From sequence record LR745206.1: a DNA stretch of 64,000 nucleotides. One strand, given 5' to 3'. This document shows, piece by piece, positions 5,585 to 26,724 of this stretch; position 1 is the stretch's first letter; each line of letters begins with the position of its first letter. The position numbers and the translations under genes are program-made. The notes below the pieces were generated by a model. That model made no database searches. It was not told the DNA's origin and was given only the letters and a program-made list of their open reading frames with translations.

Positions 5585-6058
5585 ATGACAAGATCACAAT
5601 TAAATAATCTTATTGGATTTACTTTTAATTTTCATGAAAACATGGGAAATAAAGTTCTAGATTGCGATTCTTCTTATTTATTAGAGAAATGGGAGAAATA
5701 TATTGGAGTATCTACAAAAAATAACATATCTTATGATTATTTTTTAGAAAATAAAACATACTTTCATTTGGTTATAAGAAGATGGTTTGGTAAATGGGAT
5801 AAGAATGGTAAAGATTGGGATAATATATTACCAATACTTAATTTTATCAATGAGATTAATCTTTTGGATCCTATGGGTAGATTTAATAATATAATGACAC
5901 CGGATGATTTAATAAAATTATTCAATAAACATATCGGTGATGTCAATGAAATTAATAAATGTGAATATAAACACTTACATGCTAATGTAGTTAAAAGAGT
6001 TGATACTTGGATAAATAAATTAAAAAGAGAATATAATTTAACATTAATATTAGATTAG
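5585..6058 (+). CDS. hypothetical protein
   Basis: ATG5585 after TATATTTG 5571-5578; ends KREYNLTLILD. Confidence 0.65.
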   Translation: MTRSQLNNLIGFTFNFHENMGNKVLDCDSSYLLEKWEKYIGVSTKNNISYDYFLENKTYFHLVIRRWFGKWDKNGKDWDNILPILNFINEINLLDPMGRFNNIMTPDDLIKLFNKHIGDVNEINKCEYKHLHANVVKRVDTWINKLKREYNLTLILD

Positions 6059-6282
6059 TATAAGTCAGAGAAGCTATCGCCGGTCCCGAAAGGGTGAAAT
6101 AACTGGAGAAACTTCGACACTACTGAACCTAACGTGGGAGGCAATCTTCGGATAGCCGTTACTACCACGGAAGTAGCAACACATACAGACCTAGGATATC
6201 GGTTCTCCTTTGATGGTCGGGTTTGTGGCAATAGATAGATGATAGCTTAAAGCAAAATGTCGGGTAAGCTCAACTTATACTA
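6056..6282 (+). ncRNA. rnpB: minimal RNase P RNA (catalytic domain, S-domain largely absent)
   Basis: Hand-folded P1, P2, P3, P4 pseudoknot with bulged U, P5, P6 pseudoknot, P7, P15-P17 with GGU in L15; conserved-region-like GGAGAAACUUCG, UAGAUAGAUG, CAAAAUGUCGGGUA. Confidence 0.88.
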
Positions 6283-6301
6283 ATTTTTTAATAAAAAAGA
6301 T

Positions 6302-6508
6302 ATGAAGAAAGGTGATAAATTAATATGCACTAAAGAAGTTAATAATTTTTTAGGAAACACTCTATTTGAAAAGGATAAAGAATATGATGTTCTTTATGTT
6401 GATAATGAGGATATAGAAGTAATGGTTTGTTTAAATCATGTTTTATATGCTAATGAGTATAATTTATTTCCATTGGAATGGGTATTAAATAATTTCAAAA
6501 AAATATGA
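6302..6508 (+). CDS. hypothetical protein
   Basis: 68-aa ORF in operon. Confidence 0.6.
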   Translation: MKKGDKLICTKEVNNFLGNTLFEKDKEYDVLYVDNEDIEVMVCLNHVLYANEYNLFPLEWVLNNFKKI

Positions 6509-6912
6509 TAAAGGAAAAAATAGAAGAGGTTATTGAAAACCTAATAATAAATACCGAATTGGGAACACTAGTTTGGGAGGAAGGTGATACCAAAGATAGA
6601 AGATATGAGAGGTGTTTAATTTCTTATGGTGAGGATGGTACTCAGTTTGAGATAGAAATAAAATATACTTTAATTAATAACAAATGGAAATTTGATGATT
6701 CTAAGTATATTTGGGTACGTAATAAAAAACTACCAAAGGGACATTATTATGGATCGACCGATTCTGTTATGAAACTTAAAGAGATTTTACTAAAAAAATA
6801 TTGCCAAGATTTAAATCCAAGTGAGAGCGATGTTGCTGATATACTTGGTGAGATATCCAAGGGTATATCATTATCAACATATAGGGATAATAAACTAAAT
6901 AAAATTTTATGA
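6505..6912 (+). CDS. hypothetical protein with C-terminal RxxK motif
   Basis: Ends YRDNKLNKIL. Confidence 0.65.
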   Translation: MIKEKIEEVIENLIINTELGTLVWEEGDTKDRRYERCLISYGEDGTQFEIEIKYTLINNKWKFDDSKYIWVRNKKLPKGHYYGSTDSVMKLKEILLKKYCQDLNPSESDVADILGEISKGISLSTYRDNKLNKIL

Positions 6913-7550
6913 AAAATGCTTGGAAACTATTTGATTATGGTGAGACTCCAATCTATCTAAAATATTGGTTTTTAGGTCTTTTTCTATTCATACCAGTGAG
7001 CTTAGTATTGATGATATTTGTATCTATACTTATACATGAAATGGCTCATGTCCGTACAGCTAGAAAATTAGGATACAATACAGATTATATTTTTATAGAT
7101 ATATTACATGGTGGTGCTTTGGTAGATTCCAAACACGGTGATAACAACAAACACGCTATATCAGTAGCTTTAGCAGGTCCAACATCCAATTTGATATTAG
7201 CATTAATTATAACTTTAGGTACAACAATATTTACATCATTTAGTCCGGATAATATAGATTCACCAATAATTCCATTTTTAGCAGAATTTATCGGTATTAA
7301 TTTAATATTATTTATTGCTAATTTAATACCAATATACCCACTTGATGGTGGTAGGATAAGTAAAGCATTTTCAAAAATGTGTTTTGGTGAAAATAAAGGT
7401 AGAGTTATAAATGGTATAATCTCAATGATTTTATCTTTTTGTGTTTTGAGTTATGGTATAATAAAGGTTGATTTTATATGGATAATATTCTCAGTAATAT
7501 TTATTATAACATCATATGGTGAAATTAAATCAAAAAAAGATGAACTTTGA
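6909..7550 (+). CDS. M50 family site-2 intramembrane metalloprotease
   Basis: HEMAH, LAGP, NLIPIYPLDGGRI, TM helices. Confidence 0.92.
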   Translation: MKNAWKLFDYGETPIYLKYWFLGLFLFIPVSLVLMIFVSILIHEMAHVRTARKLGYNTDYIFIDILHGGALVDSKHGDNNKHAISVALAGPTSNLILALIITLGTTIFTSFSPDNIDSPIIPFLAEFIGINLILFIANLIPIYPLDGGRISKAFSKMCFGENKGRVINGIISMILSFCVLSYGIIKVDFIWIIFSVIFIITSYGEIKSKKDEL

Positions 7551-7950
7551 TAATTTAATAGATGATGTTATAGATTTAGGTAAAAAATATACTATAATAT
7601 CAGGATATTGTGATGTTATTAATCATGAAAGCCAACATCACAAGTGTATAAAAAAAATCGATAGTGATTCTTATTATACTATAATAGGATGTTTTGATGA
7701 TGAAATGATAGAAGAGTGTATTTCTGAATATGAAATAGATTTTGATGAAATAATAGAGGGTGAATATAATTTTTATGCTGTTTTTACTTATGATGGTGGG
7801 GATTATGATGAATATGGTAGATGTACTATGAGACCATACTTGGAAGTTGAGTACATAAGATGGGATTTTATTCAAACCTTTGAGGAAAGAGATAGAGAGT
7901 TTAAATTAAGCCAGATATTAGAATCTGATTTTGATATATTTAATATATGA
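7540..7950 (+). CDS. acidic hypothetical protein with RxxK motif
   Basis: Near C-terminus DREFKLSQILE. Confidence 0.6.
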   Translation: MNFDNLIDDVIDLGKKYTIISGYCDVINHESQHHKCIKKIDSDSYYTIIGCFDDEMIEECISEYEIDFDEIIEGEYNFYAVFTYDGGDYDEYGRCTMRPYLEVEYIRWDFIQTFEERDREFKLSQILESDFDIFNI

Positions 7951-8258
7951 GAGAAGCACTAATTATAGAAACAGGGGATATATTGGATATAAAATTTCAA
8001 TATAAAATGATGAATTTCAGATTCAGTCTTCCTGAGGGAATTGAGATAGATGATAATTCTTTATTAGAAAAGGAAACCTATGTAAGAACAGAACCAGGTA
8101 AACCTTTGAAACTTGAAGGTTCTTTGACAAAACCTGGAGAAGATGATGAAAAAAGAACTTATTATATATTATCGGACGGAAAAAAGTACTATGAAAATGA
8201 ACTTATCATAGGTTTGAATAATATAAGGGAATATAAGATAAAAAATATAATTGAATAA
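7947..8258 (+). CDS. hypothetical protein with RxxK motif
   Basis: Ends IREYKIKNIIE. Confidence 0.6.
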   Translation: MREALIIETGDILDIKFQYKMMNFRFSLPEGIEIDDNSLLEKETYVRTEPGKPLKLEGSLTKPGEDDEKRTYYILSDGKKYYENELIIGLNNIREYKIKNIIE

Positions 8259-8847
8259 TATGTTTATAATTGACACAAACAAAGAAGATGTATTGAATGA
8301 TTTTCCATTTATACAAGAATGGATAGATACATTACAATTGAACATCATTAAAAAAGAAATTGATGATTCAAAAATTGAATTTTACTACTCTTATGGATTT
8401 TTCGTACCAAAAGTGGATAATAAAGAAGATCTTTATAATGATATGTATGAGAAATGTTCTAAGATGTTATTTGATGATAGATTAACATTTGAGCTATCTA
8501 AAGTAAGAGTAAATCTTACCATGAAGATAGGAAAATTGATATTATCAAATAGATTAGATAAAGGTAATATACCATCTTTATTAAAAAAAATAGTTACTGA
8601 ATTAACTAAGGTTAAAATGACAGTTGAGGCTGAGTATCATGAAAACAAGGATGTAATTGACTCTATTCCGGAGATAGATACTAATATAGTATCATTTGAT
8701 GTTATCAGGGATGTTATATCCAGTGATTACTCAGAATCTCAAAATTTTGATATTGATTCTATTTTAGATAAAATTTCTAAAAAAGGTGTAGAGTCTTTAT
8801 CAGATGAAGAGAAAGAATTCTTGGATAAGAAAAGTAAAGACATTTAA
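8251..8847 (+). CDS. protein with DUF6576-like C-terminus
   Basis: Ends IDSILDKISKKGVESLSDEEKEFL. Confidence 0.65.
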   Translation: MNNMFIIDTNKEDVLNDFPFIQEWIDTLQLNIIKKEIDDSKIEFYYSYGFFVPKVDNKEDLYNDMYEKCSKMLFDDRLTFELSKVRVNLTMKIGKLILSNRLDKGNIPSLLKKIVTELTKVKMTVEAEYHENKDVIDSIPEIDTNIVSFDVIRDVISSDYSESQNFDIDSILDKISKKGVESLSDEEKEFLDKKSKDI

Positions 8848-9665
8848 TGTTAGATTTAAATAAAATATACCAAGGTGATTCATTACAATTATTAAAAGAT
8901 ATGCCGGACAACTCTGTTGATCTGGTAATAACCTCACCTCCATATGCTGATTTGAAAACATATATAGATTTCAAGGGAATATTAGCAGATGATTATGTGG
9001 AATGGTTTCTACCGTATTGTAATGAGATATGTCGAGTTATTAAACCAACTGGTTCATTTATTCTAAATATAAATGATAAGGTTGAAAATAGGTTCAGACA
9101 TCCTTATGTATTTGATTTAATATCTGAGTTACATAAAAGAACAGATCTTAAATTATTTGAGAGACTATTTTGGAATAAAATGAAAGGTTTACCAAATAGG
9201 TATAGATTTGGTGATAGAGTAGAGTATCTATTTTGGTTTGCTAAAGATAAAGAATTCTATTTTAATATAGATGAAATGAGAACCGAGTATGCTGAGAAAT
9301 CCATAAAAAGAATGAAGAAACCTTTGAAGAAGAGGTTTGCTAGAACTGATGGTGATGGTGAAGTAGATTATAAAGACTGGAACCCGAATCCAAAGGGTGC
9401 TTTACCAACCACACTTGTTAATATATCATCCGAGTCCAAAAGGATTGCTGATAATCATGTGGCTGTTTATCCAGTTGAGTTGGTTAAATACTTTATAAAA
9501 GGTTCTTCGAAAGAAGGAGATGTAATTCTAGATCCATTTATGGGTACTGGTACAACTGCTTTAGCAGCAAAGGAGTTGAATAGAAATTATATCGGATTTG
9601 AGCTACAACCTGATTATATAAAAGTTGCTAAGAAAAGAATAGATGATTATGTTAAGAATATCTAA
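8847..9665 (+). CDS. DNA methyltransferase, N4-C/N6-A beta class
   Basis: ITSPPY, HVAVYP, ILDPFMGTGTT. Confidence 0.92.
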   Translation: MLDLNKIYQGDSLQLLKDMPDNSVDLVITSPPYADLKTYIDFKGILADDYVEWFLPYCNEICRVIKPTGSFILNINDKVENRFRHPYVFDLISELHKRTDLKLFERLFWNKMKGLPNRYRFGDRVEYLFWFAKDKEFYFNIDEMRTEYAEKSIKRMKKPLKKRFARTDGDGEVDYKDWNPNPKGALPTTLVNISSESKRIADNHVAVYPVELVKYFIKGSSKEGDVILDPFMGTGTTALAAKELNRNYIGFELQPDYIKVAKKRIDDYVKNI

Positions 9666-9933
9666 GAATTTAAATAAAATAGTTTCAATAAAAAGATACT
9701 TATCTGAGGTTAATGAATCTGTTGATATAGACAGTTTTCTAATTATACCTGGTGTAACAATATACACTGGTATCTATCAAAGTAAGAATACACTTTGTTT
9801 CATGGAACAAACAGGGGATTCAGTATTGGTAGTTGAATTTCCATCAGAGGGAGATGTTGATAGATTTTTCACATTTATAATGAGGGATATTAAATTAAAT
9901 CAAATAATGAATTTAAATGACTCTAAAGAATAG
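9643..9933 (+). CDS. hypothetical protein with RxxK motif
   Basis: MRDIKLNQIM near C-terminus. Confidence 0.6.
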   Translation: MIMLRISKNLNKIVSIKRYLSEVNESVDIDSFLIIPGVTIYTGIYQSKNTLCFMEQTGDSVLVVEFPSEGDVDRFFTFIMRDIKLNQIMNLNDSKE

Positions 9934-9957
9934 AGATAAAAATTGACCAAATGTTAA

Positions 9958-10203
9958 TTGAAAGTTTATTGTAAGAGAACAGTTATAAATGAAAATAGTA
10001 ATAAAATTAGATGGAGTAGAGATAAGTATTATCAAACGAAAACTCCTGATGATTATGAATTAAATAATGGTGTTTATATGTATGTTATAGTGGAAGATCA
10101 TAAAAAATTATATTATCCATTATCAAAAAAAGATTTTGATAGATATTTTATTGGTATGGATGAAATTAGAAATAATAAATTAAATCAAATATTAAATGAT
10201 TGA
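9958..10203 (+). CDS. hypothetical protein with RxxK motif
   Basis: Ends IRNNKLNQILND. Confidence 0.6.
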   Translation: MKVYCKRTVINENSNKIRWSRDKYYQTKTPDDYELNNGVYMYVIVEDHKKLYYPLSKKDFDRYFIGMDEIRNNKLNQILND

Positions 10204-10936
10204 TTTTAACTTCCTAACGGATTTAGAAATATTGAAATGGAATGATAGATTATTTGGTAGTAAATACCAAGTAAAACCACATTATGGTAATAAAATGTCT
10301 TATCCAGAACTTTTGGTATTTAAAAAAGATTATAATGGTGGGTTATTAACCATACCAGATCCATCTATAAATTTTGATTTTATATTTTCTGTCAGTTCAA
10401 ATAGAACACAGAATTTTTTTGATATTTTAGATAAAATAATTAAAAAGGATTTTATCACTGAATTTACACATCATGTTGGTAATAACAAATATGAATCAAA
10501 TAATATTTTAATTACTGATGGTTTAGTAACATCTAAGAGTGAGGAAGAACACTATTTACTAAAAAGGAAATATATAAAATATACATATAAGTTCACTGGT
10601 AAATTATCATCCATAATGGCATATGTTTCATGTATAAGTGATAGTATAAATATATTTGAATTGATTTGGGGATATGATGAGAAAGGTAATGAGCATTGCT
10701 TACTCGACTATCCAATTGGTACTATTGTATCTATTGAGAAGGATAAGTCCAAGGACTATTTAGTATTGGAGTATAAATATGAAAAATCCACAAATAATGA
10801 ATTTATTATAAAATATATCTGTTCTGAAATGTTAAACACCGATTCTTGTATTATACAATACAGTGATACGAAGATATATAAAAGTGATGAATTGTGTTAT
10901 AGTAGAAACAATCGAATTGATGATATCTTAAATTAA
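10196..10936 (+). CDS. hypothetical protein with RxxK-like motif
   Basis: Ends SRNNRIDDILN. Confidence 0.65.
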   Translation: MIDFNFLTDLEILKWNDRLFGSKYQVKPHYGNKMSYPELLVFKKDYNGGLLTIPDPSINFDFIFSVSSNRTQNFFDILDKIIKKDFITEFTHHVGNNKYESNNILITDGLVTSKSEEEHYLLKRKYIKYTYKFTGKLSSIMAYVSCISDSINIFELIWGYDEKGNEHCLLDYPIGTIVSIEKDKSKDYLVLEYKYEKSTNNEFIIKYICSEMLNTDSCIIQYSDTKIYKSDELCYSRNNRIDDILN

Positions 10937-10937
10937 A

Positions 10938-11312
10938 ATGGATTATAAGGAATTTGTATATAAAAACAATAAACCATATATATTGGACTTCTCCACAAAG
11001 AGTTGTGTTAGAGAGGTTCTTATAGAAGAAAGACTTGAACAACTTCTATCACTATTTAAGGATAAAGATATTGTTACTGGAAAAGAAATAGTTAATAATT
11101 TAAAATTATCTGATGATGATAGATATATCAATGGTCATGGTGATAACCCGGAATATGTTAAATGTTTTTTTAAGCATTTCTTACATGAAAATAAAGTGTT
11201 AGTAACAAACCCTGGTCAAGATTTAGCATCATCAGTTTTGATTATTAATCATTATGGGTTAACAAAAGAGTATCAAAGAGAATTAAAACTATCAAGAATA
11301 TTGGATAATTAA
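10938..11312 (+). CDS. hypothetical protein with RxxK motif
   Basis: Ends QRELKLSRILDN. Confidence 0.6.
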   Translation: MDYKEFVYKNNKPYILDFSTKSCVREVLIEERLEQLLSLFKDKDIVTGKEIVNNLKLSDDDRYINGHGDNPEYVKCFFKHFLHENKVLVTNPGQDLASSVLIINHYGLTKEYQRELKLSRILDN

Positions 11313-11322
11313 TTTTAATCCT

Positions 11323-11330
11323 TATATTTG
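11323..11330 (+). promoter_or_regulatory. TAnnTTTG promoter element upstream of atypical tRNA
   Basis: TATATTTG 9 nt before the acceptor stem. Confidence 0.6.
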
Positions 11331-11339
11331 TAAAAATAT

Positions 11340-11420
11340 GCGGGTGGTTCCTAATCAGTACAGGTGTGCTGGGTGGCTTCTAACCCCACTGGATTTGGGG
11401 TTCGACTCCTCTCACCCGCA
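11340..11420 (+). tRNA. atypical tRNA-like element, probably tRNA-Arg(TCT)-derived
   Basis: Acceptor GCGGGTG/CACCCGC, T-arm GGGG-TTCGACT-CCTC, loop CTTCTAA; irregular D region and anticodon stem; no encoded CCA. Confidence 0.6.
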
Positions 11421-11622
11421 CAAATTGGAAAAGGCAAACTATATAGGATACGACTTCATGTTTGATGTTTATTATCTTTGGGATAAAGGATCAAGATTGG
11501 GTGTTAAACGGAATCCACATTACACCGATAATAATGGGTGGATGTCAAGTAGGGTATGGGAGACTGATAGAAGTTATGGTCAATTCCAAACAATATTAAA
11601 TGTTTTACATATAAAATTGAAG

Positions 11623-11910
11623 ATGAAAGGAAAATGGAATGGTCAAACCAAGACCGAATTTGATAAAAACTCAAGACGAGTAAAAGATATCGTTGATAAA
11701 AGCGCTGGTGATAAAGATAAGGCTATCGCTTTAGCAACAACACAATCCAATAGAATAACAGATGAGTGGAAAGCTATCAATAGAGCTATGGCTGCTAAAG
11801 AAGCAAACCAAGAACATATCTTCGAGGTATTCTTCCAAAGAGCATATGAGTTAGGATCTGTATCAAAACAAGATTATCGTAATTATAAACTTGAAAAGTT
11901 AGGGATATGA
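11623..11910 (+). CDS. hypothetical protein with RxxK motif
   Basis: Likely start MKGKW within ORF 11338..11910; ends YRNYKLEKLGI. Confidence 0.6.
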   Translation: MKGKWNGQTKTEFDKNSRRVKDIVDKSAGDKDKAIALATTQSNRITDEWKAINRAMAAKEANQEHIFEVFFQRAYELGSVSKQDYRNYKLEKLGI

Positions 11911-12215
11911 TAATTAAATCTACAAATTTATTTGATTTAATATGTGATAATATTAAAGGATATAAAGGATATACTCTTGTTGAGATTTCACAAGAAGGTG
12001 ATTCTAAAATCATACATTATGATACAAAAGAAGAGTTTGATAAATATTTCGAAACCAAAAAACACCCTTATTACCCCGGTAATATGTTAGTTCCTAAAAA
12101 CATAACAGGAAATTATGGTGATAGTAAAGAATGTCTAATTGATGATTCGAATGTATCGGAATATATAGAATTCAATAATCTCTATTTATTCATTGATGGT
12201 AAATTATCAAGATAA
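11907..12215 (+). CDS. hypothetical protein
   Basis: Translationally coupled ORF. Confidence 0.6.
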   Translation: MIIKSTNLFDLICDNIKGYKGYTLVEISQEGDSKIIHYDTKEEFDKYFETKKHPYYPGNMLVPKNITGNYGDSKECLIDDSNVSEYIEFNNLYLFIDGKLSR

Positions 12216-12218
12216 ATT

Positions 12219-12536: not shown

Positions 12537-12539
12537 ATT

Positions 12540-12950: not shown

Positions 12951-13006
12951 TTTGATATAGTTAAATAAATTAACTATATTTGTAGAAATACTATAAAAAA
13001 GAAAAT

Positions 13007-15202: not shown

Positions 15203-15256
15203 TTAAGTTTAATAGAATAATATTACGTATATTTGTAAAAATAATAAATAGTTAAA

Positions 15257-17303: not shown

Positions 17304-17338
17304 AAATCTATATATAAATAATAATATATAGAATTACT

Positions 17339-17392: not shown

Positions 17393-17450
17393 TAATAAGA
17401 GAGCGAGTGCTTGGTATAACTCATATGGGTACAAAAATCACGAATAAGAT

Positions 17451-18197: not shown

Positions 18198-18198
18198 T

Positions 18199-19843: not shown

Positions 19844-19856
19844 ACCTTATATTTGT

Positions 19857-20201
19857 ATGATAATTAAGAAATATATAAGATTTTTAGAATCAAATTGGAC
19901 ACCAGAGGATATACTAAAAGAGTTATCTTTGGATTTGAAAGATAATGGTCTACATGTTGATTTTCCAAATGATAATAAATTTGGTGGTAGATTCTATCTT
20001 AGTGTAGATGATACTGATAAAGTATTTTGTAAAAATTATCCAAGTGATGATATGGATTGGTTACATAATAAACCAATTATGTTGAAGTTCTATGATGAAT
20101 TATCCGACTTCGGATTCAATAGAGATATAGACTTTAAACTTTATGGTGGTGGAACTGGTGTTAATATAGTATTTGATGATAAGAAAGTAGTTAAATTGTA
20201 A
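19857..20201 (+). CDS. small tagged protein
   Basis: MIIKKYIRFLES; DILKELSLDLKDNG module. Confidence 0.65.
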   Translation: MIIKKYIRFLESNWTPEDILKELSLDLKDNGLHVDFPNDNKFGGRFYLSVDDTDKVFCKNYPSDDMDWLHNKPIMLKFYDELSDFGFNRDIDFKLYGGGTGVNIVFDDKKVVKL

Positions 20202-21373
20202 TGATATTAAAAAAATATAAAATGTTTTTAGAAAGTAGAGAGAGTGATATGTGGGATATTATTCCAAAGTCAGTTAAAGACTTACATAAACTTTTTCAAG
20301 CAAGTGGTAAGAAGTTATACCTTGTTGGTGGATCAGTGCGTGACTTCTTAACAAAGGATAAACCAAAAGATTTTGACTTAGCAACAGATGCTCTTCCTGA
20401 TGAAGTGTTAGAGATTGTTGGTGGTAAATATAGAACTAATCTACAAGGTAAAGCCTTTGGTGTTGTTGTAGTTTACACAAAAGAAATTCCAGAGGGAATG
20501 GAAATTGCAACTTTTAGAGAGGATATTTCTAAAGGTAGAAATCCTGAGGTTAAATTAGGAGTTACTATTGAAGATGATGTTAAACGTAGGGATATCACAT
20601 ATAACGCATTATTCTATGATTTGGATAAGAAAGAGATTATTGATTTAACTGGTGGTAGAACAGATCTAGAATCTGGTATTACTAGAATGGTTGGTGATCC
20701 AATGGAAAGATTTGATGAGGATTCACTTCGTATTCTTCGAGCATTTCGATTTGCTTCGAGATATGAACATCCACTACATAAAGATACAGAACGTGCAATA
20801 GAGAAGAGGAAACAACTAGAGAATGTTGATCCAGAGAGTGGTGAAATGAAAAGAATTTCACAAGAAAGAGTTTGGGAAGAAATGACTAAAGCTTGGAAAC
20901 AAGCTAAGGATTACAATTATTATTTAAACTTCTTTACTAAGTTTGGTATGTGGGATCAAGTATTCCCTGGTGCTGATATCAATACCAATTTGATAGATTC
21001 TAAAAACTTTGTCATTTTGATTGCTAATCTATTCAAGAATGAAAGTACTGATGGATTGGAAGAAAGACTAATACAGGAATATAAAATTGATGGTGATACT
21101 GTAACAAAAGTAATCTTTTTGATTAAGTTTTTGAAATTTACACCAGAGGTTGTATTTGATACTTATAAAAAGAAACAACAATGTGGTATTGACGATGCAA
21201 CTATTCTAGAATGGATAGATGTTAATAATATTACTGATGAATCATTTATTAAATTTGTTGAATATAAACCATCTGTCTCTGCTCAAGATTTGATGTCACA
21301 AGGTTTCAAAGGTGCTGAATTGGGTATAGAGATTAAAAGATTGGAGATAGAAAAATTCAAGAAAATACTATGA
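20201..21373 (+). CDS. cca: class II tRNA nucleotidyltransferase (CCA-adding / poly(A) polymerase family)
   Basis: VGGSVRD, KDFDLAT, EIATFR, EDDVKRRDITYNAL, EDSLRILRAFRF. Confidence 0.92.
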   Translation: MILKKYKMFLESRESDMWDIIPKSVKDLHKLFQASGKKLYLVGGSVRDFLTKDKPKDFDLATDALPDEVLEIVGGKYRTNLQGKAFGVVVVYTKEIPEGMEIATFREDISKGRNPEVKLGVTIEDDVKRRDITYNALFYDLDKKEIIDLTGGRTDLESGITRMVGDPMERFDEDSLRILRAFRFASRYEHPLHKDTERAIEKRKQLENVDPESGEMKRISQERVWEEMTKAWKQAKDYNYYLNFFTKFGMWDQVFPGADINTNLIDSKNFVILIANLFKNESTDGLEERLIQEYKIDGDTVTKVIFLIKFLKFTPEVVFDTYKKKQQCGIDDATILEWIDVNNITDESFIKFVEYKPSVSAQDLMSQGFKGAELGIEIKRLEIEKFKKIL

Positions 21374-22329
21374 GATTAAAAAAATATAATCAATTTATAA
21401 AAGAATCTCTTGGTATTAGATTGGATCATGAGGGTAAGCCAAGATGCACCGCTTTTGATGGTGGCGTCGAACATGGTGATATTGATTATACTGAGGTAGA
21501 AAATCTAAAGCCTAATGTTATAGATGAATTTATTGAAGAGATAAAAAGATGTATTGAGATTAATCATGAGGTTTTAGCTACTGATTTATCAAGTAGGATA
21601 GACACTGCTATTAATAAGGTTTTTGGTAGTGATATTAAATGGTATTTCAAACCGGTTGATACAGAAAAAGATTCAAGTAAGTTTTCATTTCATTATGATG
21701 ATTTATCATTAGCTTTGGCTAAGTTGATTAACCTAGGGTACTCAATAGGATATGTAACTCAAAAATACTCCACTGATAGAAGTTGGAACTTTTCAAATTT
21801 TTTTGGTTATGATGGTGAAATATACACAAGTGAAAAGGATTTTAAGAAAATATCTTCCAATCCAATAGACTATCATGGACCAGATATATCACACCATTGT
21901 ATATTAGCTAGTTCATTTGATATAAAAACCTCATTATCAGAGGAACATATTACTTATGGTATAGAGGACCAAGGTAGGAGTGAAATATCTGTTATATTCC
22001 CAAAAGCATTTGGATATGGTTATGATGCTGGTGCTAAAATGGTTGACCTCGAAAGAGATTTATATTATGAGAAAATAGGAACAACTTATGATAGATATCA
22101 TAACTTGATGATGAATGATGATAGAACTACGGAAGAAGAAAAGGAGTATGTAGATATACAACGTAAAGAAGATGTCATTAGATATGGTGAGGAACATGTT
22201 AAGAAGAGAGAACAAGAAAGAAAGGATTTTGATGCCTTACCGAAAGAAGAACAAGAAAGAAGAAGGAAAATTAATAAAGAAAAAATGGCTGAATTTCTCA
22301 AAGATTTAGACCTTGATGGGATTTTATAA
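21370..22329 (+). CDS. tagged hypothetical protein
   Basis: MRLKKYNQFIKES; charged C-terminus. Confidence 0.65.
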   Translation: MRLKKYNQFIKESLGIRLDHEGKPRCTAFDGGVEHGDIDYTEVENLKPNVIDEFIEEIKRCIEINHEVLATDLSSRIDTAINKVFGSDIKWYFKPVDTEKDSSKFSFHYDDLSLALAKLINLGYSIGYVTQKYSTDRSWNFSNFFGYDGEIYTSEKDFKKISSNPIDYHGPDISHHCILASSFDIKTSLSEEHITYGIEDQGRSEISVIFPKAFGYGYDAGAKMVDLERDLYYEKIGTTYDRYHNLMMNDDRTTEEEKEYVDIQRKEDVIRYGEEHVKKREQERKDFDALPKEEQERRRKINKEKMAEFLKDLDLDGIL

Positions 22330-22361
22330 TAAATACATTTTATTTTACAATATATAGTCAT

Positions 22362-23102
22362 ATGATAAATTTCGTAACACACATAAAGGATACGATTGGT
22401 AATAACTACCTTGGTATAAAAATGGAGAAAGGATTAGTCGATAAGTTTCTTAATGAATTAGAAGAAATTATTGGTGATGATTTCGAAACATTTACACAAA
22501 ATCAACAAAATAGAGATCATGGATCATATCACATAACTGTTATTAATGTGATGGATTATAATAGATTATCCAAAGAAATGGGTATTGATAAATTTGTTAA
22601 TTCGTTAGATCCTATTATGAAATACCCAATAGATGATTTGAAAATGATGGGTATTGGTACGGCTGAGAAAAATGGTAATCGTGCTTATTTTATCGTCTGT
22701 CAAAGTGATAAACTGGACGCTGCTAGAGATAGATATGGTCTACCTAAACAAGACTTTCACACAACACTTGGATTCAAACATAAAGATGTTTTTGGTGTTA
22801 GAAAAAATGAGGTGTTGAAAAAAGAAGGAAAGTTTTTAAAACTTTTGAAGCAAGAATTTTATAAGAATGACAATTGGCAATTTGTGAAAAGAATTGAAAA
22901 TTTTGATTTAGATCCTAAATCTGAAATTATACCTATATCCATATCAACATCCTACTTAAAAATTAAATGTGATGGATACTATTTAGATATTGGTTATATG
23001 GAAGAGGGTGAGAAGTTTTGGGTGATGACAAAGTACCCAATTGATGAAGAGTTACCAAGAATGTCAGAAACAGAAATTGCTAAAATTTTAAATAAAAAAT
23101 AG
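22362..23102 (+). CDS. 2H phosphoesterase superfamily protein
   Basis: Two HxT motifs: YHITVI and DFHTTLGF. Confidence 0.8.
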   Translation: MINFVTHIKDTIGNNYLGIKMEKGLVDKFLNELEEIIGDDFETFTQNQQNRDHGSYHITVINVMDYNRLSKEMGIDKFVNSLDPIMKYPIDDLKMMGIGTAEKNGNRAYFIVCQSDKLDAARDRYGLPKQDFHTTLGFKHKDVFGVRKNEVLKKEGKFLKLLKQEFYKNDNWQFVKRIENFDLDPKSEIIPISISTSYLKIKCDGYYLDIGYMEEGEKFWVMTKYPIDEELPRMSETEIAKILNKK

Positions 23103-23106
23103 AATT

Positions 23107-23382
23107 ATGAAAATGGAATTATCAAAAGATTATTATAGTCTAGATGAATGTTCGGATAGAAATACCGTAATAAAAAGATTGGATAAACTAGAAAACGAAG
23201 GAAAAATATATTATGATATAGATGTTGATATGTTGGAGATTGAGGATCTCGATATGGATGACCAGGATATAGAAGATTTGGAAGATCTTCTTGATAGTTG
23301 TGATGTTTTTCCTTATCTTGAAAGAGATGGTGAGGATGAAGAATATGATGATTTGTATGATGATGAAGATGATGATTTTTAA
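23107..23382 (+). CDS. very acidic small protein
   Basis: D/E-rich 91-aa ORF. Confidence 0.6.
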   Translation: MKMELSKDYYSLDECSDRNTVIKRLDKLENEGKIYYDIDVDMLEIEDLDMDDQDIEDLEDLLDSCDVFPYLERDGEDEEYDDLYDDEDDDF

Positions 23383-23391
23383 ATAAATATT

Positions 23392-23970
23392 ATGATAAGA
23401 GTTGGTATCACTGGTGAAATGGGAAGCGGTAAAAGCTTTTGTTCAAAACTATTTGGACAATTGGGTATTCCAGTTTTTAACTCAGATGATGTTGCTAGAA
23501 CAATTGTCAATTCAAATTTAAGTCTAAAAGAAGAAATCAAAAAAGAATTTGGTGAAGTTTATGATGATAAAGGTATAATGATACCTTCGTCAATAAGAAG
23601 TATTGTCTTTGTCAAAGGTGCTGAAGATAGATTAAAGAAATTAAATAGTTTAATACACCCATATGTATTTAATAATTTCAATGAATTCTGTTTACTTAAA
23701 AAGAGTAGTCCTTATATAATAGCTGAATCCGCAATACTATTTGAATCTGGAATGGATAAGATAATGGATAAGATAATATATGTATCTACTGATTTGGAAT
23801 TAAGAATAAAAAGAACATTTGATAGAAGTGGATTCTCAGAAGAAGAATATAATCAACGAATGAAAGATCAAATACCCAATAAAGAGAAAATATCTGATTA
23901 TATAATCTATAATAATATAGGAGATAATGTTGAAGAACAAGTTATGTTAATTCATAAATCTATGATTTAG
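23392..23970 (+). CDS. coaE: dephospho-CoA kinase
   Basis: VGITGEMGSGKS, LNSLIHP, ESAILFE, RMKDQ. Confidence 0.9.
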   Translation: MIRVGITGEMGSGKSFCSKLFGQLGIPVFNSDDVARTIVNSNLSLKEEIKKEFGEVYDDKGIMIPSSIRSIVFVKGAEDRLKKLNSLIHPYVFNNFNEFCLLKKSSPYIIAESAILFESGMDKIMDKIIYVSTDLELRIKRTFDRSGFSEEEYNQRMKDQIPNKEKISDYIIYNNIGDNVEEQVMLIHKSMI

Positions 23971-23987
23971 TTTTAATATATACTAAT

Positions 23988-24356
23988 ATGAAGAAGTTCA
24001 GTGATATAACAAATAAGGAAAGTTCAATAGAATTTAAAAAGGATAAACCAGCTGATTTATCTAATGATATCCAAAATCTGGATGATCAAATACTAGATCA
24101 AGTAAAAACTACTATACTTGATGGTGATTGGGAAATCGTTAATGTTATAGATGTTTCAACTAATAAACCTACAAATGAGGCTATTATAATTAATGCTGAA
24201 TTAGGTGATAAGCAAATCAAAAGAGGTGAATTTCTTTATGTAACAGCTCTTATCAATAAAAAGGGTAGACCATATCACCAAAGTCAAATGGGTGTTGTAA
24301 AGGTAAGAGTTGTTGAAATATACAATACATTATTGGTACTAAACACATTAAGATAA
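23988..24356 (+). CDS. tagged hypothetical protein
   Basis: MKKFSDI; TAATATATA 5 nt upstream. Confidence 0.65.
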   Translation: MKKFSDITNKESSIEFKKDKPADLSNDIQNLDDQILDQVKTTILDGDWEIVNVIDVSTNKPTNEAIIINAELGDKQIKRGEFLYVTALINKKGRPYHQSQMGVVKVRVVEIYNTLLVLNTLR

Positions 24357-24359
24357 TCT

Positions 24360-24680
24360 ATGAAATACTTAAAAGCTATTGAAAATTTTAATCCAAAATT
24401 TAAAGAACCAAAATACACAAGTGGTCCTAATATTGGATTAGATATACGTGATAGACATGGTGTTAAAATGATTGATAATATGATATCAAAAAAACAAGGT
24501 GTTATAGATGGTGATAATATTTTGTGGAAATATGTAAACGATCAATGGGTTGGTAAAAGATATGTTATGACTACTAAACACAGACATATTTGGTTAAGTG
24601 AACTACGTCCCGGGGAAGAAATAAAATCTTGGGTATCTGGTGAAAATGCTGACTATGAAGAAGTATTTAATGATAATTAA
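24360..24680 (+). CDS. tagged hypothetical protein
   Basis: MKYLKAIENF. Confidence 0.65.
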   Translation: MKYLKAIENFNPKFKEPKYTSGPNIGLDIRDRHGVKMIDNMISKKQGVIDGDNILWKYVNDQWVGKRYVMTTKHRHIWLSELRPGEEIKSWVSGENADYEEVFNDN

Positions 24681-24682
24681 AT

Positions 24683-25135
24683 ATGAAACATATAAAAACC
24701 TTTAATCAAAAGTATCATACTGAAAGTTATCCAGAAAATTGGAAGGATATCAAAAAAGAATTGGATGAAAAGTCTTATTACTTAGATTATCCTGAGTTAA
24801 TATATGCTTTTGCTGATTTAATCGATGAAGAAGTTATAAAAATAGAAGATATCACTAAACTATATAAATATCAAAAATCATCTAAAACAAATAGTGGAGT
24901 AACGAAAGATGCTTATTATGGTGTGATAGTATATGATATCAAAATCAAAATATTAGATAAATCTAGAGTAGATGAATATATCAATTATAGGTCTAAAGAA
25001 GCTTATTTCCTATTTCGAGAATATTATGGTTATACCATTTTGAATGGTCACACACTTGATTACTTTACTAAATGGTATACAGATAGAGATATTGATGAAT
25101 TTAATCTTTATTCTAAAGCGGTTTGGGTTGATTAA
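24683..25135 (+). CDS. tagged hypothetical protein
   Basis: MKHIKTFNQ. Confidence 0.65.
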   Translation: MKHIKTFNQKYHTESYPENWKDIKKELDEKSYYLDYPELIYAFADLIDEEVIKIEDITKLYKYQKSSKTNSGVTKDAYYGVIVYDIKIKILDKSRVDEYINYRSKEAYFLFREYYGYTILNGHTLDYFTKWYTDRDIDEFNLYSKAVWVD

Positions 25136-25520
25136 AATATCCACTTCGTTTACCCCACTTATCAATTTTAATAATACAGAAGTTATCACCTCCACTTTTT
25201 GATCTCCAACCCAACCCATATGATTTTAAACTATCGATAAAATCATCTATTATGTGGTTATTAGTTAGATTGTTATCTAATATATTATTATCATCAGTTA
25301 TTTTTATTATAATATAATTTTTATACTCATTGGAATATCTGGTGTTTGTGTGTATTGTTATTCTAGGATCTCTTAATAAATGTGTATGATTACCATTAAC
25401 AATTTCAACTTGTAATCCAATATCTTCAAGTTCTAGTGAAAGGTCCTTTAAAACTTGAATTTTTTTATCAACTAAGGTTTCCTTCCTTTCGAATATTTCA
25501 TATGATAATATATTAATCAT
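25113..25520 (-). CDS. tagged hypothetical protein
   Basis: Restarted at MINILSYEIFE (ATG 25520), AATATATA upstream. Confidence 0.6.
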   Translation of the reverse strand: MINILSYEIFERKETLVDKKIQVLKDLSLELEDIGLQVEIVNGNHTHLLRDPRITIHTNTRYSNEYKNYIIIKITDDNNILDNNLTNNHIIDDFIDSLKSYGLGWRSKSGGDNFCIIKIDKWGKRSGYFNQPKPL

Positions 25521-25560
25521 AAAGATATATATTTTATTAAATTTTTGTATATTTGTATTA

Positions 25561-25791
25561 ATGAAGATTAATGACAAACTTATACAAGAAGGATTCACTG
25601 AATCTATATTAGAATTCTATCACAGTAGAACCAAACAAGGTGATACTGTTATTAAGAGTGCTTTTTTATTTGGTAAAAAAGAAGATAATCATATTGTTAA
25701 AGTTGAATTGGTTACTGGTAGAGTGGTTTGTTATGAAATGAATCTAGCTAATATCAGACAGAAAAAAATAAATTTATTTCTTTCTAGATAA
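25561..25791 (+). CDS. hypothetical protein with RxxK motif
   Basis: TATATTTG 25548-25555; ends IRQKKINLFLSR. Confidence 0.6.
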   Translation: MKINDKLIQEGFTESILEFYHSRTKQGDTVIKSAFLFGKKEDNHIVKVELVTGRVVCYEMNLANIRQKKINLFLSR

Positions 25792-25890
25792 TTTGTATTT
25801 ATATTAAATTATGATTATATTTGTTGTGTGAATGGGAACGATTCAGATACAAATATTCACAGAAATTAAATCAAAAAACATTGAAAAAGA

Positions 25891-25922
25891 TTTGGTAAAA
25901 CAATGAATGTTCCTTATCTTTG
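25891..25922 (+). promoter_or_regulatory. full Bacteroidota consensus promoter (TTTG-N20-TAnnTTTG)
   Basis: TTTG 25891-25894 and TATCTTTG 25915-25922. Confidence 0.7.
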
Positions 25923-25973
25923 TAAGACAAGAAAGTTAAATAATTAATCACTACATAAAAACTAAAAAAAACT

Positions 25974-26591
25974 ATGGCAAATTTATTCTCAAAAGCAAAA
26001 AAAGTAGCACCGAAAACGGCAAAAGCTAAAGACCAAAAAGTTCGTATCTCTATTACAGATTCAACTTTTTTCGATAAAGTACAAAAATTAGAGTCTCTAC
26101 AAGATTCTATGAAAACTGCTAAGGCGAAAGCGGATATGATATCTGACGAACTTCGTGACCTTGGTAAAACTGAGTGGGCAAAACTTTATGACCAAACAGG
26201 TAAAAACCCAGGATCGGTTATGTTAGAGCAAATCAACGCTGATGATGTGGCACAACTTATGTTCGTACCAACTGATAAATACATCACTATCACTGAGGAG
26301 AGAGCAGAAGAGCTTCGTGAGACTTACGGTGAAGAAATCGTTAGTGAAGATACTACATTCTCTTTTGATTCTGTTATGATTGAGAAATACGGAGAGATCC
26401 TTTCTCGTCTAATCGAAGAGTCTAGTGAAATCACTGAGTCTGATAAAGAAAGAATAATCAAAGCAACTACTAAATTCTCTGTAGCGAAAGGTACAATTGA
26501 CAACTTCAAAACCTATGGTGATGTTGAAGAAGTTATGGAGTCTGTAAAACCAGTAGTAGCACTTAAAAACATTGAAGTTATCAAAGGATAA
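25974..26591 (+). CDS. hypothetical protein, probably highly expressed
   Basis: 205-aa ORF with own promoter and terminator; frequent TTC/ATC/CGT codons. Confidence 0.75.
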   Translation: MANLFSKAKKVAPKTAKAKDQKVRISITDSTFFDKVQKLESLQDSMKTAKAKADMISDELRDLGKTEWAKLYDQTGKNPGSVMLEQINADDVAQLMFVPTDKYITITEERAEELRETYGEEIVSEDTTFSFDSVMIEKYGEILSRLIEESSEITESDKERIIKATTKFSVAKGTIDNFKTYGDVEEVMESVKPVVALKNIEVIKG

Positions 26592-26599
26592 TATAATAT

Positions 26600-26626
26600 A
26601 GTTGTGGGTTTATCCCACAACTTTTT
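26600..26626 (+). terminator. intrinsic terminator
   Basis: AGTTGTGGG-TTTAT-CCCACAACT-TTTT. Confidence 0.75.
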
Positions 26627-26650
26627 GCATTGGTGTCGGTATAAGACATT

Positions 26651-26724
26651 GGTCTTTTAGCTCAGTCGGTTAGAGCGCCTCGCTCATAACGAGGATGTCG
26701 TAGGTTCGAGCCCTACAAAGACCA
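26651..26724 (+). tRNA. tRNA with CAT anticodon (Ile2 or elongator Met)
   Basis: Cloverleaf GGTCTTT/AAAGACC, CCTCG-CTCATAA-CGAGG, TTCGA loop; G1-C72 so not initiator; followed by CAA rather than CCA. Confidence 0.93.

Follow-up and report, generated by a model that had tools for sequence, protein, structure and literature searches.

Does a huge bacteriophage that carries an RNase P-like RNA as well as tRNA-processing enzymes possess the means to mature, or even repair, both ends of its own tRNAs? This question was raised by a 64,000-nt stretch (referred to as the window) of LR745206.1, the 634,780-bp genome of an uncultured "Mahaphage" predicted to infect Bacteroidota. A first-pass annotation of the sequence had noticed an RNase P-like RNA, a class II CCA-adding enzyme, a 2H phosphoesterase and two tRNA genes without encoded CCA, one of them closely preceded by a short sequence element, and had inferred that the phage can build or repair both tRNA ends independently of host processing. 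Our analysis confirmed each of these observations, whereas the interpretation drawn from them was only partly supported. Specifically, the RNA is RNase P-like, the enzymes are real and the lack of encoded CCA extends to the entire genome, but neither repair nor independence from the host was shown.

The RNA at window positions 6055-6282 appeared as an intergenic island of up to 52% GC (in 60-nt windows) within a window of 29% GC. Rfam searches gave it no hit, even at E<=10, and the thermodynamic stability of this copy was not exceptional (z = -1.1). The RNA belongs to a family of 25 distinct members located on large phage contigs (individual relatives are referred to below by L numbers). A covariance model built only from relatives, without the window copy in its seed, matched the latter from end to end at 129.6 bits (E=7e-29), while no second copy was detected in the other 570 kb of the genome. 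Five relatives in turn yielded significant, full-length hits to RNase P models only: L124 to RF00010 (44.4 bits, E=1e-10 to 7e-13), L135 to RF00010 (39 bits, E=9e-9), L145 to RF00373 (34.3 bits, E=3e-6), L136 to RF00373 (25.3 bits) and L119 to RF00373 (24.2 bits, E=2e-5). However, no family member reached an RNase P gathering score, and in a reciprocal test the phage-family model did not detect E. coli rnpB, even with filters off. The phage origin of the family is supported by synteny between two curated huge-phage genomes and by Gp23 capsid genes next to family members.

The fold of the RNA was examined in more detail via covariation among the relatives, which supports P1-P5, P15-P17 and the P4 pseudoknot with its bulged U. 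Of all pair cells, 93-94% pair (94.2% in the evaluation in which 34 of 49 pairs were compensatory), against 68% (68.3%) in shuffles and 32-43% with slid partners. Moreover, the P4 pseudoknot was supported although it had not been part of the model that made the alignment. The CR-I-like consensus, the conserved GG(U) at the L15 position and the J5/15 GCAA seen in most members were likewise not selected by the search motif, and correspond to positions 61-70, 292-294 and 247-249 of E. coli M1 RNA, respectively. In contrast, conservation of J18/2 and CR-V across the family is partly by construction, because they were the search motif, and in the window subtype the J2/4 sequence is GCAAAA rather than the usual ACAGAA. 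Most of the specificity domain, which binds the tRNA T-loop in known enzymes, and all of P18 are missing. The features of the RNA and of the other loci discussed below are listed in the table.

Features of the window, with their positions, strand and supporting evidence
Position	Strand	Feature	Support
5549-6058	+	Upstream ORF of unknown function (169 aa; ATG start at 5585 gives 157 aa), directly upstream of the RNA in both phages; TATATTTG at 5571-5578 is a candidate promoter for the ORF and the RNA together	tblastn 31% identity to L119 8452-9024; no Pfam, PHROG, NCBIfam or PDB match
6055-6282	+	Miniaturised RNase P RNA homologue (about 228 nt), single copy in the 635-kb genome	Family model R1; RNase P hits of relatives; covariation
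6056-6070	+	P1 5' strand: UAGUAUAAGU at 6056-6065 and GAG at 6068-6070, pairing with 6269-6282; stop codon of the upstream ORF (6056-6058) lies inside it	Helix 1: 11 pairs, 10 with compensatory changes, 98% paired
6071-6078	+	P2 5' strand (AAGCUAUC), pairing with GAUAGCUU at 6241-6248	Six modelled pairs of helix 2: 99% paired, 3 of 6 covary
6080-6106	+	P3: CCGGU/ACUGG enclosing a CCC-GAAA-GGG tetraloop hairpin	Read from the sequence; variable in length across the family
6106-6119	+	CR-I-like GAGAAAC plus P4 5' strand (A6111 C6112 U6113 [U6114 bulged] C6115 G6116 A6117 C6118 A6119)	Family consensus aG.AA..UC (upper case >=95%, lower case >=75%); U6114 invariant; compare M1 RNA GAGGAAAGUC at 61-70
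6120-6176	+	P5 (CUACU 6120-6124 with AGUAG 6172-6176) enclosing a vestigial specificity domain: stem CGUGG 6133-6137 with CCACG 6165-6169, and a UUCG-capped hairpin at 6140-6157	Helices 5-8: 94-100% paired, 9 of 11 pairs covary; loops of the small hairpin are GNRA or UUCG in relatives
6176-6228	+	J5/15 GCAA (6176-6179); P15 CACA 6180-6183 with UGUG 6224-6227; P16-like GACC 6188-6191 with GGUC 6215-6218; P17-like hairpin 6192-6210; L15-position GGU at 6220-6222	All 3 P15 pairs covary in relatives; the CACA/UGUG pairing of the window copy is read by eye and sits one column off that register; GG >=95% and U >=75% conserved; Rfam alignment places CGGGU on the L15 segment of the model; M1 RNA has G292 G293 U294 there
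6230-6248	+	J18/2-like AAUAGAUAGAUGAU running into the P2 3' strand	Compare M1 RNA UAGAUGAAUGACUG at 327-340; family conservation by construction (search motif)
6258-6265	+	P4 3' strand (UGUCGGGU), preceded by the J2/4 and CR-V-like AAAGCAAAA at 6249-6257	95.6% paired, 6 of 8 pairs covary; the C-G pair beside the bulged U never varies
11323-11330	+	TATATTTG, a Bacteroidota-type -7 promoter-like element, 9 nt upstream of the tRNA-like gene	Same distance in L119; present in L143; L123 keeps it in front of the downstream ORF but lacks the tRNA-like gene
11340-11420	+	Non-canonical tRNA-like gene: 7-bp acceptor stem, 9-nt linker, 6-bp D stem with a 4-nt loop, anticodon region Y-U-CUA-A-C (CUA at 11380-11382) flanked by a C.C mismatch, T-loop UUCGACU, discriminator A followed by CAAA, no CCA	RF01852 28.5 bits, E=0.017; three orthologues have 5 compensatory pairs
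20201-21373	+	Class II nucleotidyltransferase (CCA-adding enzyme / poly(A) polymerase family), 390 aa	PF01743 (E=1e-29); phrog_2244 'tRNA nucleotidyltransferase' (E=2e-57); motifs GGSVRD43-48, D57xD59, RRD129-131 and EDSLR173-177; more than 120 homologue clusters at about 80% identity, on contigs of up to 816 kb
21370-22329	+	319-aa ORF of unknown function overlapping the stop of the nucleotidyltransferase gene (ATGA)	Only 8 homologues; AF2 pLDDT 72.5, mostly helical; no significant fold or sequence match in the PDB; no tblastn match in the syntenic L119 block
22362-23102	+	2H phosphoesterase (2H-SAK family), 246 aa	PF22547 (E=2.6e-20); both HxT motifs (H57-I-T59, H133-T-T135) conserved in the L119 orthologue (62-63% identity)
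23392-23970	+	Dephospho-CoA-kinase-family P-loop kinase (CoaE-like)	PF01121 (E=1.7e-36), full length
26651-26724	+	tRNA-Met(CAU), elongator-type or Ile2-type, no encoded CCA (discriminator A, then CAAAA)	Canonical in ARAGORN; Rfam 73 bits

The reduced architecture might in turn indicate that the RNA derives from RNase P but is not a catalyst, and instead acts as a decoy that binds host RnpA protein or pre-tRNAs, thereby redirecting or throttling host tRNA processing during infection. In line with this, the specificity domain is nearly absent, the window subtype departs from the conserved ACAGAA, and no RnpA homologue appeared among the first 25 Pfam families listed for the window or among the first 25 listed for 116 neighbouring ORFs of relatives. 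In this genome, moreover, the RNA lies about 75 kb or more from the nearest tRNA array, with only one tRNA and one tRNA-like gene within 50 kb. However, the elements that matter for catalysis and substrate docking (i.e. the bulged U and its neighbouring C-G pair, J5/15 GCAA, the L15 GGU and the P4 geometry) are retained under selection, while a protein sponge would need little more than the protein-binding region. Embedding of relatives within tRNA arrays also fits co-expression with substrates, and we therefore consider a decoy role unlikely.

Indeed, several relatives sit inside tRNA arrays, and the RNA abuts tRNA genes in L142 (at 0 and 2 nt), L127 (1 nt), L150 (overlapping by one base), L137 (9 nt) and L148 (12 nt). 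Neighbouring genes of relatives include Tpt1/KptA, cREC, PTH2, a tRNA-binding domain and L7/L12. The LR745206.1 genome itself has 59 tRNA genes in tight arrays with uniform flanks (...AAAU before and N73-CAAA after) and a median spacer of 8 nt. Position -1 is U in 37 of 59, and trailers start with C in 58 of 59, usually as CAAA, and read CAA in 49. None of the 59 encodes CCA, so that a CCA-adding activity is obligatory for every phage tRNA.

Of the two tRNA genes in the window, tRNA-Met was canonical, whereas the gene at 11340 was missed by ARAGORN (as was its L119 copy) and scored only 28.5 bits against the tRNA-Sec model, whose gathering score is 47. Nevertheless, it is conserved in two other phages, with compensatory changes in the acceptor and D stems, and ARAGORN called the L143 orthologue a tRNA with anticodon CUA. 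The element in front of it is of a degenerate type, TANNTTTG, that as a whole is barely enriched (121 found, 100 expected), although the exact form TATATTTG occurs 20 times on the gene-rich + strand and 4 times on the - strand, often just upstream of ORF starts. Because the tRNA-like gene sits in the 5' UTR of ORF 11458-11910, behind a shared promoter, and because family members co-occur with tmRNA and GOLLD RNA (L137, L125), the RNase P-like RNA might mainly process non-tRNA substrates, such as phage polycistronic mRNAs, tmRNA, GOLLD-type RNAs or this tRNA-like 5' UTR element. This seems doubtful, however, since direct abutment to canonical tRNAs is the commonest context of the family and the uniform U(-1) leaders of the arrays in this genome fit classical pre-tRNA substrates.

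The first-pass annotation had named poly(A) polymerase activity of the nucleotidyltransferase as an outcome that would count against its reading, and on this point the sequence comparisons left the choice between CCA and poly(A) addition undecided. The NCBIfam PcnB subfamily model scored slightly higher than the CCA models (152 against 149 bits, effectively a tie), with all of them below their cut-offs, and E. coli poly(A) polymerase was the second-best PDB match. On the other hand, all class II motifs are present, the best PDB match is a CCA-adding enzyme (6ibp), the PHROG annotation points to a tRNA nucleotidyltransferase, and the protein shows no PcnB C-terminal domain hit. Moreover, all 59 phage tRNAs need CCA added, and phages with CCA-less tRNAs are reported to be enriched in this enzyme (PMC10879173). 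It is thus possible but unlikely that the enzyme is a poly(A) polymerase, or an A-adding or CC-adding enzyme, that would tag RNAs for decay.

We further considered whether the RNase P-like RNA, the nucleotidyltransferase and the 2H enzyme form an integrated, host-independent module that rebuilds tRNA ends damaged by host anticodon or acceptor-end nucleases, as originally proposed. The gene order Cca - x - 2H - x - CoaE-like kinase is conserved in LR756502.1, both 2H catalytic motifs are intact, jumbo phages combine 2H enzymes, kinases, ligases and CCA-adding enzymes for RNA repair (PMC7824862), and relatives of the RNA have Tpt1/KptA and cREC neighbours. However, an RNA ligase and Pnkp, for which a search elsewhere in the genome had been proposed in advance as a check on this reading, were not found among the families detected in the window, nor were a 5'-kinase or RtcB, and the ORF between the Cca and 2H genes has no recognisable fold, be it of a ligase or a kinase. 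The CoaE-like kinase matches dephospho-CoA kinase over its full length, and 2H enzymes in phages can have other roles, including the degradation of cyclic-nucleotide immune signals (Acb1). No RnpA-type protein subunit and no 3'-trailer nuclease was found among the families listed for the window and for the neighbours of relatives either, so that independence from host processing is not supported. Furthermore, the parts are scattered over 20 kb among unrelated genes (M50 protease, DNA methylase, DUF2201), and their co-location is explained by synteny of the whole block with LR756502.1 rather than by an operon, so that conserved proximity carries no functional signal. An integrated repair module appears unlikely.

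Together, these data lead us to propose, with moderate confidence, that window 6055-6282 is the single-copy gene for a miniaturised, bacterial-type RNase P RNA. Our analysis demonstrates that the RNA belongs to a conserved family on phage contigs, that it keeps the catalytic-domain architecture of RNase P RNA with a specificity domain cut down to one stem plus a small hairpin, that relatives sit inside tRNA arrays, and that the 59 tRNA genes of this phage lack CCA. What we infer from this, in the absence of expression or activity data, is its function, including catalysis: the RNA, probably bound to the host RnpA protein, would cut the 5' leaders of the phage pre-tRNAs, a host nuclease or an unidentified phage nuclease would remove the CAAA trailers, and the phage nucleotidyltransferase would then add CCA. 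This would boost tRNA 5'- and 3'-end maturation capacity for a sudden load of about 60 tRNA species. The 2H phosphoesterase and the CoaE-like kinase are neighbours whose role in tRNA repair is possible but unsupported. We found no earlier report of RNase P RNA in any virus.

Among known systems, bacterial class A RNase P RNA (RF00010; E. coli M1 RNA, rnpB) shares the order and geometry P1-P2-P3-P4-P5...P15-P16-P17...P2'-P4'-P1', a P4 of 5 bp, a bulged U and 3 bp, and the motifs CR-I GAGGAAA-like, CR-V ACAGAA-like, J5/15 GCAA, GGU in the P15/P16 internal loop and J18/2 UAGAU.AAUGA. The phage RNA differs in being about 200-230 nt rather than 377 nt, with P7-P14 reduced to one 5-bp stem plus a mini-hairpin, P18 absent and no P6 identified, and in being AT-rich and encoded by a virus. 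Type T minimal RNase P RNA of Thermoproteaceae (Pyrobaculum; Rfam RNaseP-T) and archaeal RNase P RNA (RF00373) are natural RNase P RNAs of about 200 nt that lack most of the specificity domain, and three phage members score best against the archaeal model. No hit to the RNaseP-T model was reported, however, and the phage RNAs keep the bacterial L15 GGU loop and J18/2 sequence, with two members scoring best against the bacterial class A model.

Theta (HDV-like) ribozymes next to tRNAs in gut phages (PMC10879173) are likewise phage-encoded ribozymes tied to maturation of CCA-less phage tRNAs in phages of Bacteroidota, and those phages are enriched in CCA-adding enzymes. Theta ribozymes, however, are small, self-cleaving and act in cis at tRNA 3' ends, while the present RNA is a homologue of the trans-acting 5'-end enzyme. 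Finally, CCA-adding enzymes and 2H phosphoesterases are already listed as equipment of jumbo and huge phages for tRNA 3'-end restoration and cyclic-phosphate processing (PMC7824862, PMC7162821), and nothing new was seen in the proteins themselves. What is new is their setting in a genome where 0 of 59 tRNAs encode CCA and which also has an RNase P RNA homologue.

The window is 100% identical to positions 496,001–560,000 of LR745206.1, an unannotated 634,780-bp "uncultured phage" genome (the offset being inferred from the matched stretch, window 6000–26800 = record 502000–522800). Genomes above 634 kb have been placed in the "Mahaphage" clade, with predicted Bacteroidetes hosts (Al-Shayeb et al. 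2020; PMC7162821), and this fits both the CHU_C/T9SS domain found among the proteins of the window and the presence of TATATTTG motifs. The exact octamer TATATTTG occurs 20 times on the + strand and 4 times on the – strand, commonly 2–30 nt before ORF starts, and is probably the (Bacteroidota-type) –7 box of the phage promoters, in which case some genes would be nearly leaderless. The window has a GC content of 29% and uses the standard code. Its further part encodes auxiliary metabolic and other genes, namely FolD, DHFR, PRPP synthetase, guanylate kinase, an NAD-dependent epimerase, rhomboid, NIF phosphatase, a bifunctional nuclease, a nucleotide cyclase and the protein with the CHU_C T9SS sorting domain.

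Every item listed in the first-pass annotation proved to be present: an RNase P-like RNA, a class II CCA-adding-type nucleotidyltransferase, a 2H phosphoesterase and two tRNA genes that do not encode CCA and both continue A-CAAA, with TATATTTG located 9 nt upstream of the first of these. Its interpretation, that the phage can build or repair both tRNA ends independently of host processing, was only partly supported, as detailed below.

Coordinates of the features examined in the window, in related phage loci and in the remainder of LR745206.1
Feature	Location	Remarks
ORF upstream of the RNA	window 5549-6058	orthologue lies directly before the GC island in LR756502.1
RNase P-like RNA	window 6055-6282	intergenic island of up to 52% GC
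P1	window 6056-6070 with 6269-6282	
P2	window 6071-6078 with 6241-6248	
P3	window 6080-6106	
P4	window 6111-6119 with 6258-6265	U6114 bulged
P5	window 6120-6124 with 6172-6176	
Vestigial S-stem	window 6133-6137 with 6165-6169	
UUCG hairpin	window 6140-6157	
P15	window 6180-6183 with 6224-6227	
P16/P17-like arm	window 6188-6218	
GGU	window 6220-6222	
TATATTTG octamers	window, e.g. 5571, 11323, 12975, 15228, 19848, 25548, 26949, 33999, 35391	+ strand
Non-canonical tRNA-like gene	window 11340-11420; L119 14116-14196; L143 10721-10801	CUA anticodon loop
ORF downstream of the tRNA-like gene	window 11458-11910	
Class II nucleotidyltransferase	window 20201-21373	PF01743, E=1e-29
ORF of unknown function	window 21370-22329	319 aa
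2H phosphoesterase	window 22362-23102	PF22547, E=2.6e-20
ORF before the hairpin	window 25974-26591	
Hairpin plus T-run	window 26601-26626	GTTGTGGG-TTTAT-CCCACAAC-TTTTT
tRNA-Met(CAU)	window 26651-26724	
Auxiliary metabolic and other genes	window 28100-62400	
tRNA genes of LR745206.1 outside the window	L173 42554-44023; L174 14870-19250 and 37898-40332; L175 6869-8120 and 19836-21559	
tRNAs with abnormal anticodon loops	L175 7364-7437 and 19836-19923	4-base "gtag" and 2-base "gt"
RNase P-like RNA of L142	L142 6465-6665	between tRNA-Asp (ending at 6464) and tRNA-Val (starting at 6668)
RNA islands	L137 8211-8583 and 10193-10653; L125 312-770 and 934-1179	tmRNA, GOLLD RNA and a group I intron interleaved with tRNAs
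tRNA-like hairpin	L160 6740-6850	followed by ...ACCA

Rfam did not recognise the RNA of the window at any of three sensitivities (no hit at E<=10), and its identity was approached via its relatives. A distant blastn search with the element only returned the source record, a 14-mer scan of viral contigs only returned chance hits, and a protein-anchored search with the upstream ORF found nothing. However, the related 642-kb phage LR756502.1 (locus L119), which is syntenic over the whole block, has a GC island at the same place, and this copy, which reads GAGGAAGUUCAAC ... ACAGAAAGUUGACUA, hit the archaeal RNase P model over its full length with the specificity domain deleted (24.2 bits, E=2e-5). 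Scanning viral contigs, metagenomes and genomes with a motif shared by the two copies then yielded, together with these two, 25 distinct members, many of which lie on very large viral contigs of 155–493 kb. The single hit among the genomes is a 425,361-bp contig deposited as a "Candidatus Pacearchaeota" MAG (JBBACR010000001.1, locus L163), which has the same length as the IMG/VR viral contig of family member L127 and carries the same RNase P-like RNA, so that it is probably a mis-binned huge phage.

Four more members gave significant, full-length hits to RNase P models and to nothing else, namely L124 and L135 to bacterial class A (44.4 and 39 bits) and L145 and L136 to archaeal RNase P (34.3 and 25.3 bits). 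None of these reached the curated gathering scores of the RNase P models (Rfam clan CL00002), as the best relatives attained 44.4 of 100 bits for RF00010 and 34.3 of 84 bits for RF00373. Moreover, a covariance model built from six members, without the window copy, found the window element end to end (129.6 bits, E=7e-29) and nothing else in the remaining 570 kb of the genome. The reciprocal search was negative, since the narrow, AT-rich family model does not find E. coli rnpB. Readings of the element as a group I intron, retron ncRNA, 6S RNA, tmRNA or riboswitch were also considered, but were dropped because there is no Rfam hit, no flanking RT and no split gene.

The fold of the family was examined in more detail on the 25-sequence alignment, in which 94.2% of pair cells form standard pairs, as opposed to 68.3% in shuffles and 32–43% with slid partners, and in which 34 of 49 pairs show double-sided changes. 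The long-range P4 pseudoknot was not part of the model that produced this alignment, yet it is 95.6% paired, with 6 of 8 pairs covarying, an invariant bulged U and an adjacent C-G pair that never varies, and it is flanked by CR-I (G.AA..UC) and CR-V (ACAGAA...UUA) motifs. In the window subtype, however, GCAAAA replaces the ACAGAA of most members and of M1 RNA, and MFE folding z-scores were unremarkable. The catalytic-domain helices P1, P2, P3, P5 and P15 occur in canonical order, with covariation in helices 1, 2, 5 and 9. Specifically, P15, for which pairing was counted on the unfitted alignment, covaries at all three of its pairs and closes an internal loop carrying a conserved GGU (GG at least 95% and U at least 75% conserved), corresponding to the GGU of the bacterial class A L15 loop that pairs with the tRNA 3′ CCA, while GCAA, including the equivalent of A248 in J5/15, follows P5 in most members. 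As J18/2 and CR-V were the search motif, their invariance across the family is by construction, whereas CR-I, GGU, GCAA and all the pairings are independent of it.

The Rfam class A alignment mapped the same elements, i.e. P1, P2, P3, CR-I/P4, P5, J5/15 GCAA, P15–P17 with CGGGU on the L15 segment, J18/2 and CR-V, and each motif was checked against the real E. coli rnpB sequence (CR-I at 61–75, A248, G292-G293-U294, J18/2 at 327–340 and CR-V at 347–361). The specificity domain (P7–P14, CR-II/CR-III), which binds the tRNA T and D loops, is not retained: about 140 specificity-domain positions and P18 are deleted in the class A alignment (model positions of roughly 75–215 in the Rfam alignments), and only one 5-bp stem, conserved GGAGA and CGUU..AC loops and a mini-hairpin remain. 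A non-catalytic decoy is therefore to be weighed as a rival to a functional ribozyme. No RnpA, the protein partner of bacterial RNase P, was seen in partial Pfam screens of the proteins of the window and of the ORFs neighbouring family members.

Family members often lie inside tRNA arrays. In L142 the RNA sits directly between two tRNA genes, L127, L148, L150 and L137 are similar, and L124 and L152 have 10-tRNA arrays within 2 kb. Neighbouring ORFs include Tpt1/KptA, cREC, PTH2, a tRNA-binding domain, L7/L12, HD domains and Gp23 capsid proteins. L137 and L125 also carry tmRNA, GOLLD RNA and a group I intron, forming dense "RNA islands" in large phage contigs, and an RNA acting mainly on non-tRNA substrates is a further rival reading.

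In LR745206.1 itself, ARAGORN found 58 tRNA genes outside the window, in tight arrays about 75–155 kb upstream of it, and none within 50 kb on either side. Across the 59 tRNA genes thus counted with tRNA-Met, none encodes CCA, the base after the discriminator is C in 58, and the trailer reads CAA in 49, usually CAAA. Leaders end in AAAU, with U at –1 in 37 of 59, and the median spacer is 8 nt. The A-CAAA continuation noted in the first-pass annotation is therefore a genome-wide rule and looks like a genome-wide processing signal, while U(–1) is the classical preference of bacterial RNase P. Two of the tRNAs in these arrays were reported by ARAGORN with abnormal anticodon loops and are further non-canonical tRNAs. 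Next to tRNA-Met in the window, a strong hairpin followed by a T-run lies after an ORF and 25 nt before the tRNA, which would need its own promoter in that short gap, or read-through of the hairpin.

The other tRNA of the window is tRNA-like but does not qualify as a canonical tRNA. ARAGORN was negative for the window and L119 copies, the element scored 28.5 bits against a threshold of 47 bits in Rfam, and it has a 9-nt linker and either a 9-nt loop or a C.C mismatch at 31–39. Nevertheless, it has a 7-bp acceptor stem, a Sec-like 6-bp D stem with a 4-nt loop, a T-arm with the loop UUCGACU, a discriminator, and an anticodon region in which Y-U-CUA-A-C is flanked by a mismatch. Moreover, the three orthologues (window, L119 and phage locus L143) show five compensatory pairs, and ARAGORN calls the L143 copy tRNA(cta). 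The close relative L123 lacks the gene but keeps the promoter and the downstream ORF, so that in the window the element sits in the 5′ UTR of that ORF. TAG recoding as a reason for the CUA anticodon is rejected for this window, because TAG is an ordinary stop that ends 9 of 85 ORFs, including the full-length 2H and CoaE genes, and the purpose of an amber-reading tRNA is unexplained. A scan for relatives of this gene mostly returned unrelated tRNA-like hairpins in GC-rich contigs. In the GC-rich viral contigs L158–L162, tRNA-like hairpins not recognised as tRNAs by ARAGORN contain UUCUAACCCCAC and a GGGUUCGA T-arm and lie directly after stop codons.

The nucleotidyltransferase carries the motifs of the class II Pol-beta head domain (motif A, G43GSVRD48 and D57xD59; motif B, R129RD131; motif D, E173DSLR177) and belongs to a large clade on contigs of up to 816 kb. 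Whether it might be a poly(A) polymerase had been flagged at the outset as a point on which the proposed role in tRNA maturation could fail. When profile models were compared, the PcnB and CCA models tied below their cut-offs, which leaves the enzyme undecided between CCA-adding, poly(A), CC-adding and A-adding activity, although PDB and PHROG matches lean towards CCA-adding and the 59 CCA-less tRNAs make that activity necessary. The 2H phosphoesterase scored 73.4 bits against a cut-off of 27 and has two conserved HxT motifs (HIT57–59 and HTT133–135), but its fold was not confirmed, as the single-sequence AF2 model had an unusable pLDDT of 35. The ORF between these genes overlaps the stop codon of the nucleotidyltransferase gene, to which it is translationally coupled. 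It has only 8 homologues in 5.8 billion proteins and a mostly helical model (pLDDT 72.5), and the possibility of a hidden ligase or kinase was rejected because there was no sequence or fold match in the PDB.

These data bear on the proposed integrated, host-independent repair module. A search for an RNA ligase or Pnkp elsewhere in the genome had been named in advance as a check on this idea. Neither family was found among the ORFs of the window, the rest of the genome not having been searched for proteins, and within this scope the module lacks its defining ligase and kinase, repair pathways of the T4 Pnkp + Rnl or RtcB type requiring an RNA ligase together with an end-healing kinase and phosphatase. 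The order Cca - x - 2H - x - CoaE-like kinase is kept in L119, but so is the whole block, and the module rests on proximity that synteny alone explains.

The best-supported reading is a phage-encoded, miniaturised RNase P RNA that would work, probably with host RnpA, on the phage's own tRNA arrays, with a phage CCA-adding enzyme completing the 3′ ends. We have high confidence in homology to RNase P RNA, whereas catalytic function in tRNA 5′ processing is inferred, with moderate confidence. No activity data are available on removal of pre-tRNA 5′ leaders. In its furthest form, which we consider only slightly more likely than not, this reading would mean that huge phages of Bacteroidota and their relatives encode a functional, trans-acting RNase P ribozyme. 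This would be the first viral RNase P and the smallest natural bacterial-type RNase P RNA, having lost nearly all of its specificity domain yet still processing the phage's own densely packed, CCA-less tRNA arrays, possibly with host RnpA, as part of a takeover of tRNA maturation.

To our knowledge, RNase P RNA has been treated as a hallmark of cells and organelles. Full-text searches, which covered open-access papers and bioRxiv and thus do not exclude a report elsewhere, found no paper describing an RNase P RNA encoded by a phage or virus, and the two main comparative papers on huge and jumbo phages do not mention RNase P (PMC7824862, PMC7162821). These RNAs fall below the thresholds of Rfam, so that standard annotation pipelines miss them. 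A conserved phage family of about 200–230 nt shows how far a bacterial-type RNase P RNA can be pared down in nature, which bears on the minimal-ribozyme and specificity-domain questions, and the uniform tRNA flanks of this genome (AAAU before, N73-CAAA after, no CCA) give a well-defined substrate set for testing phage-specific tRNA maturation. The accompanying proteins are familiar, as CCA-adding and 2H enzymes are already described in jumbo and huge phages (PMC7824862, PMC7162821) and phages with CCA-less tRNAs are enriched in the CCA-adding enzyme (PMC10879173), whereas the RNA would add 5′-end processing to the list of translation functions that huge phages carry.
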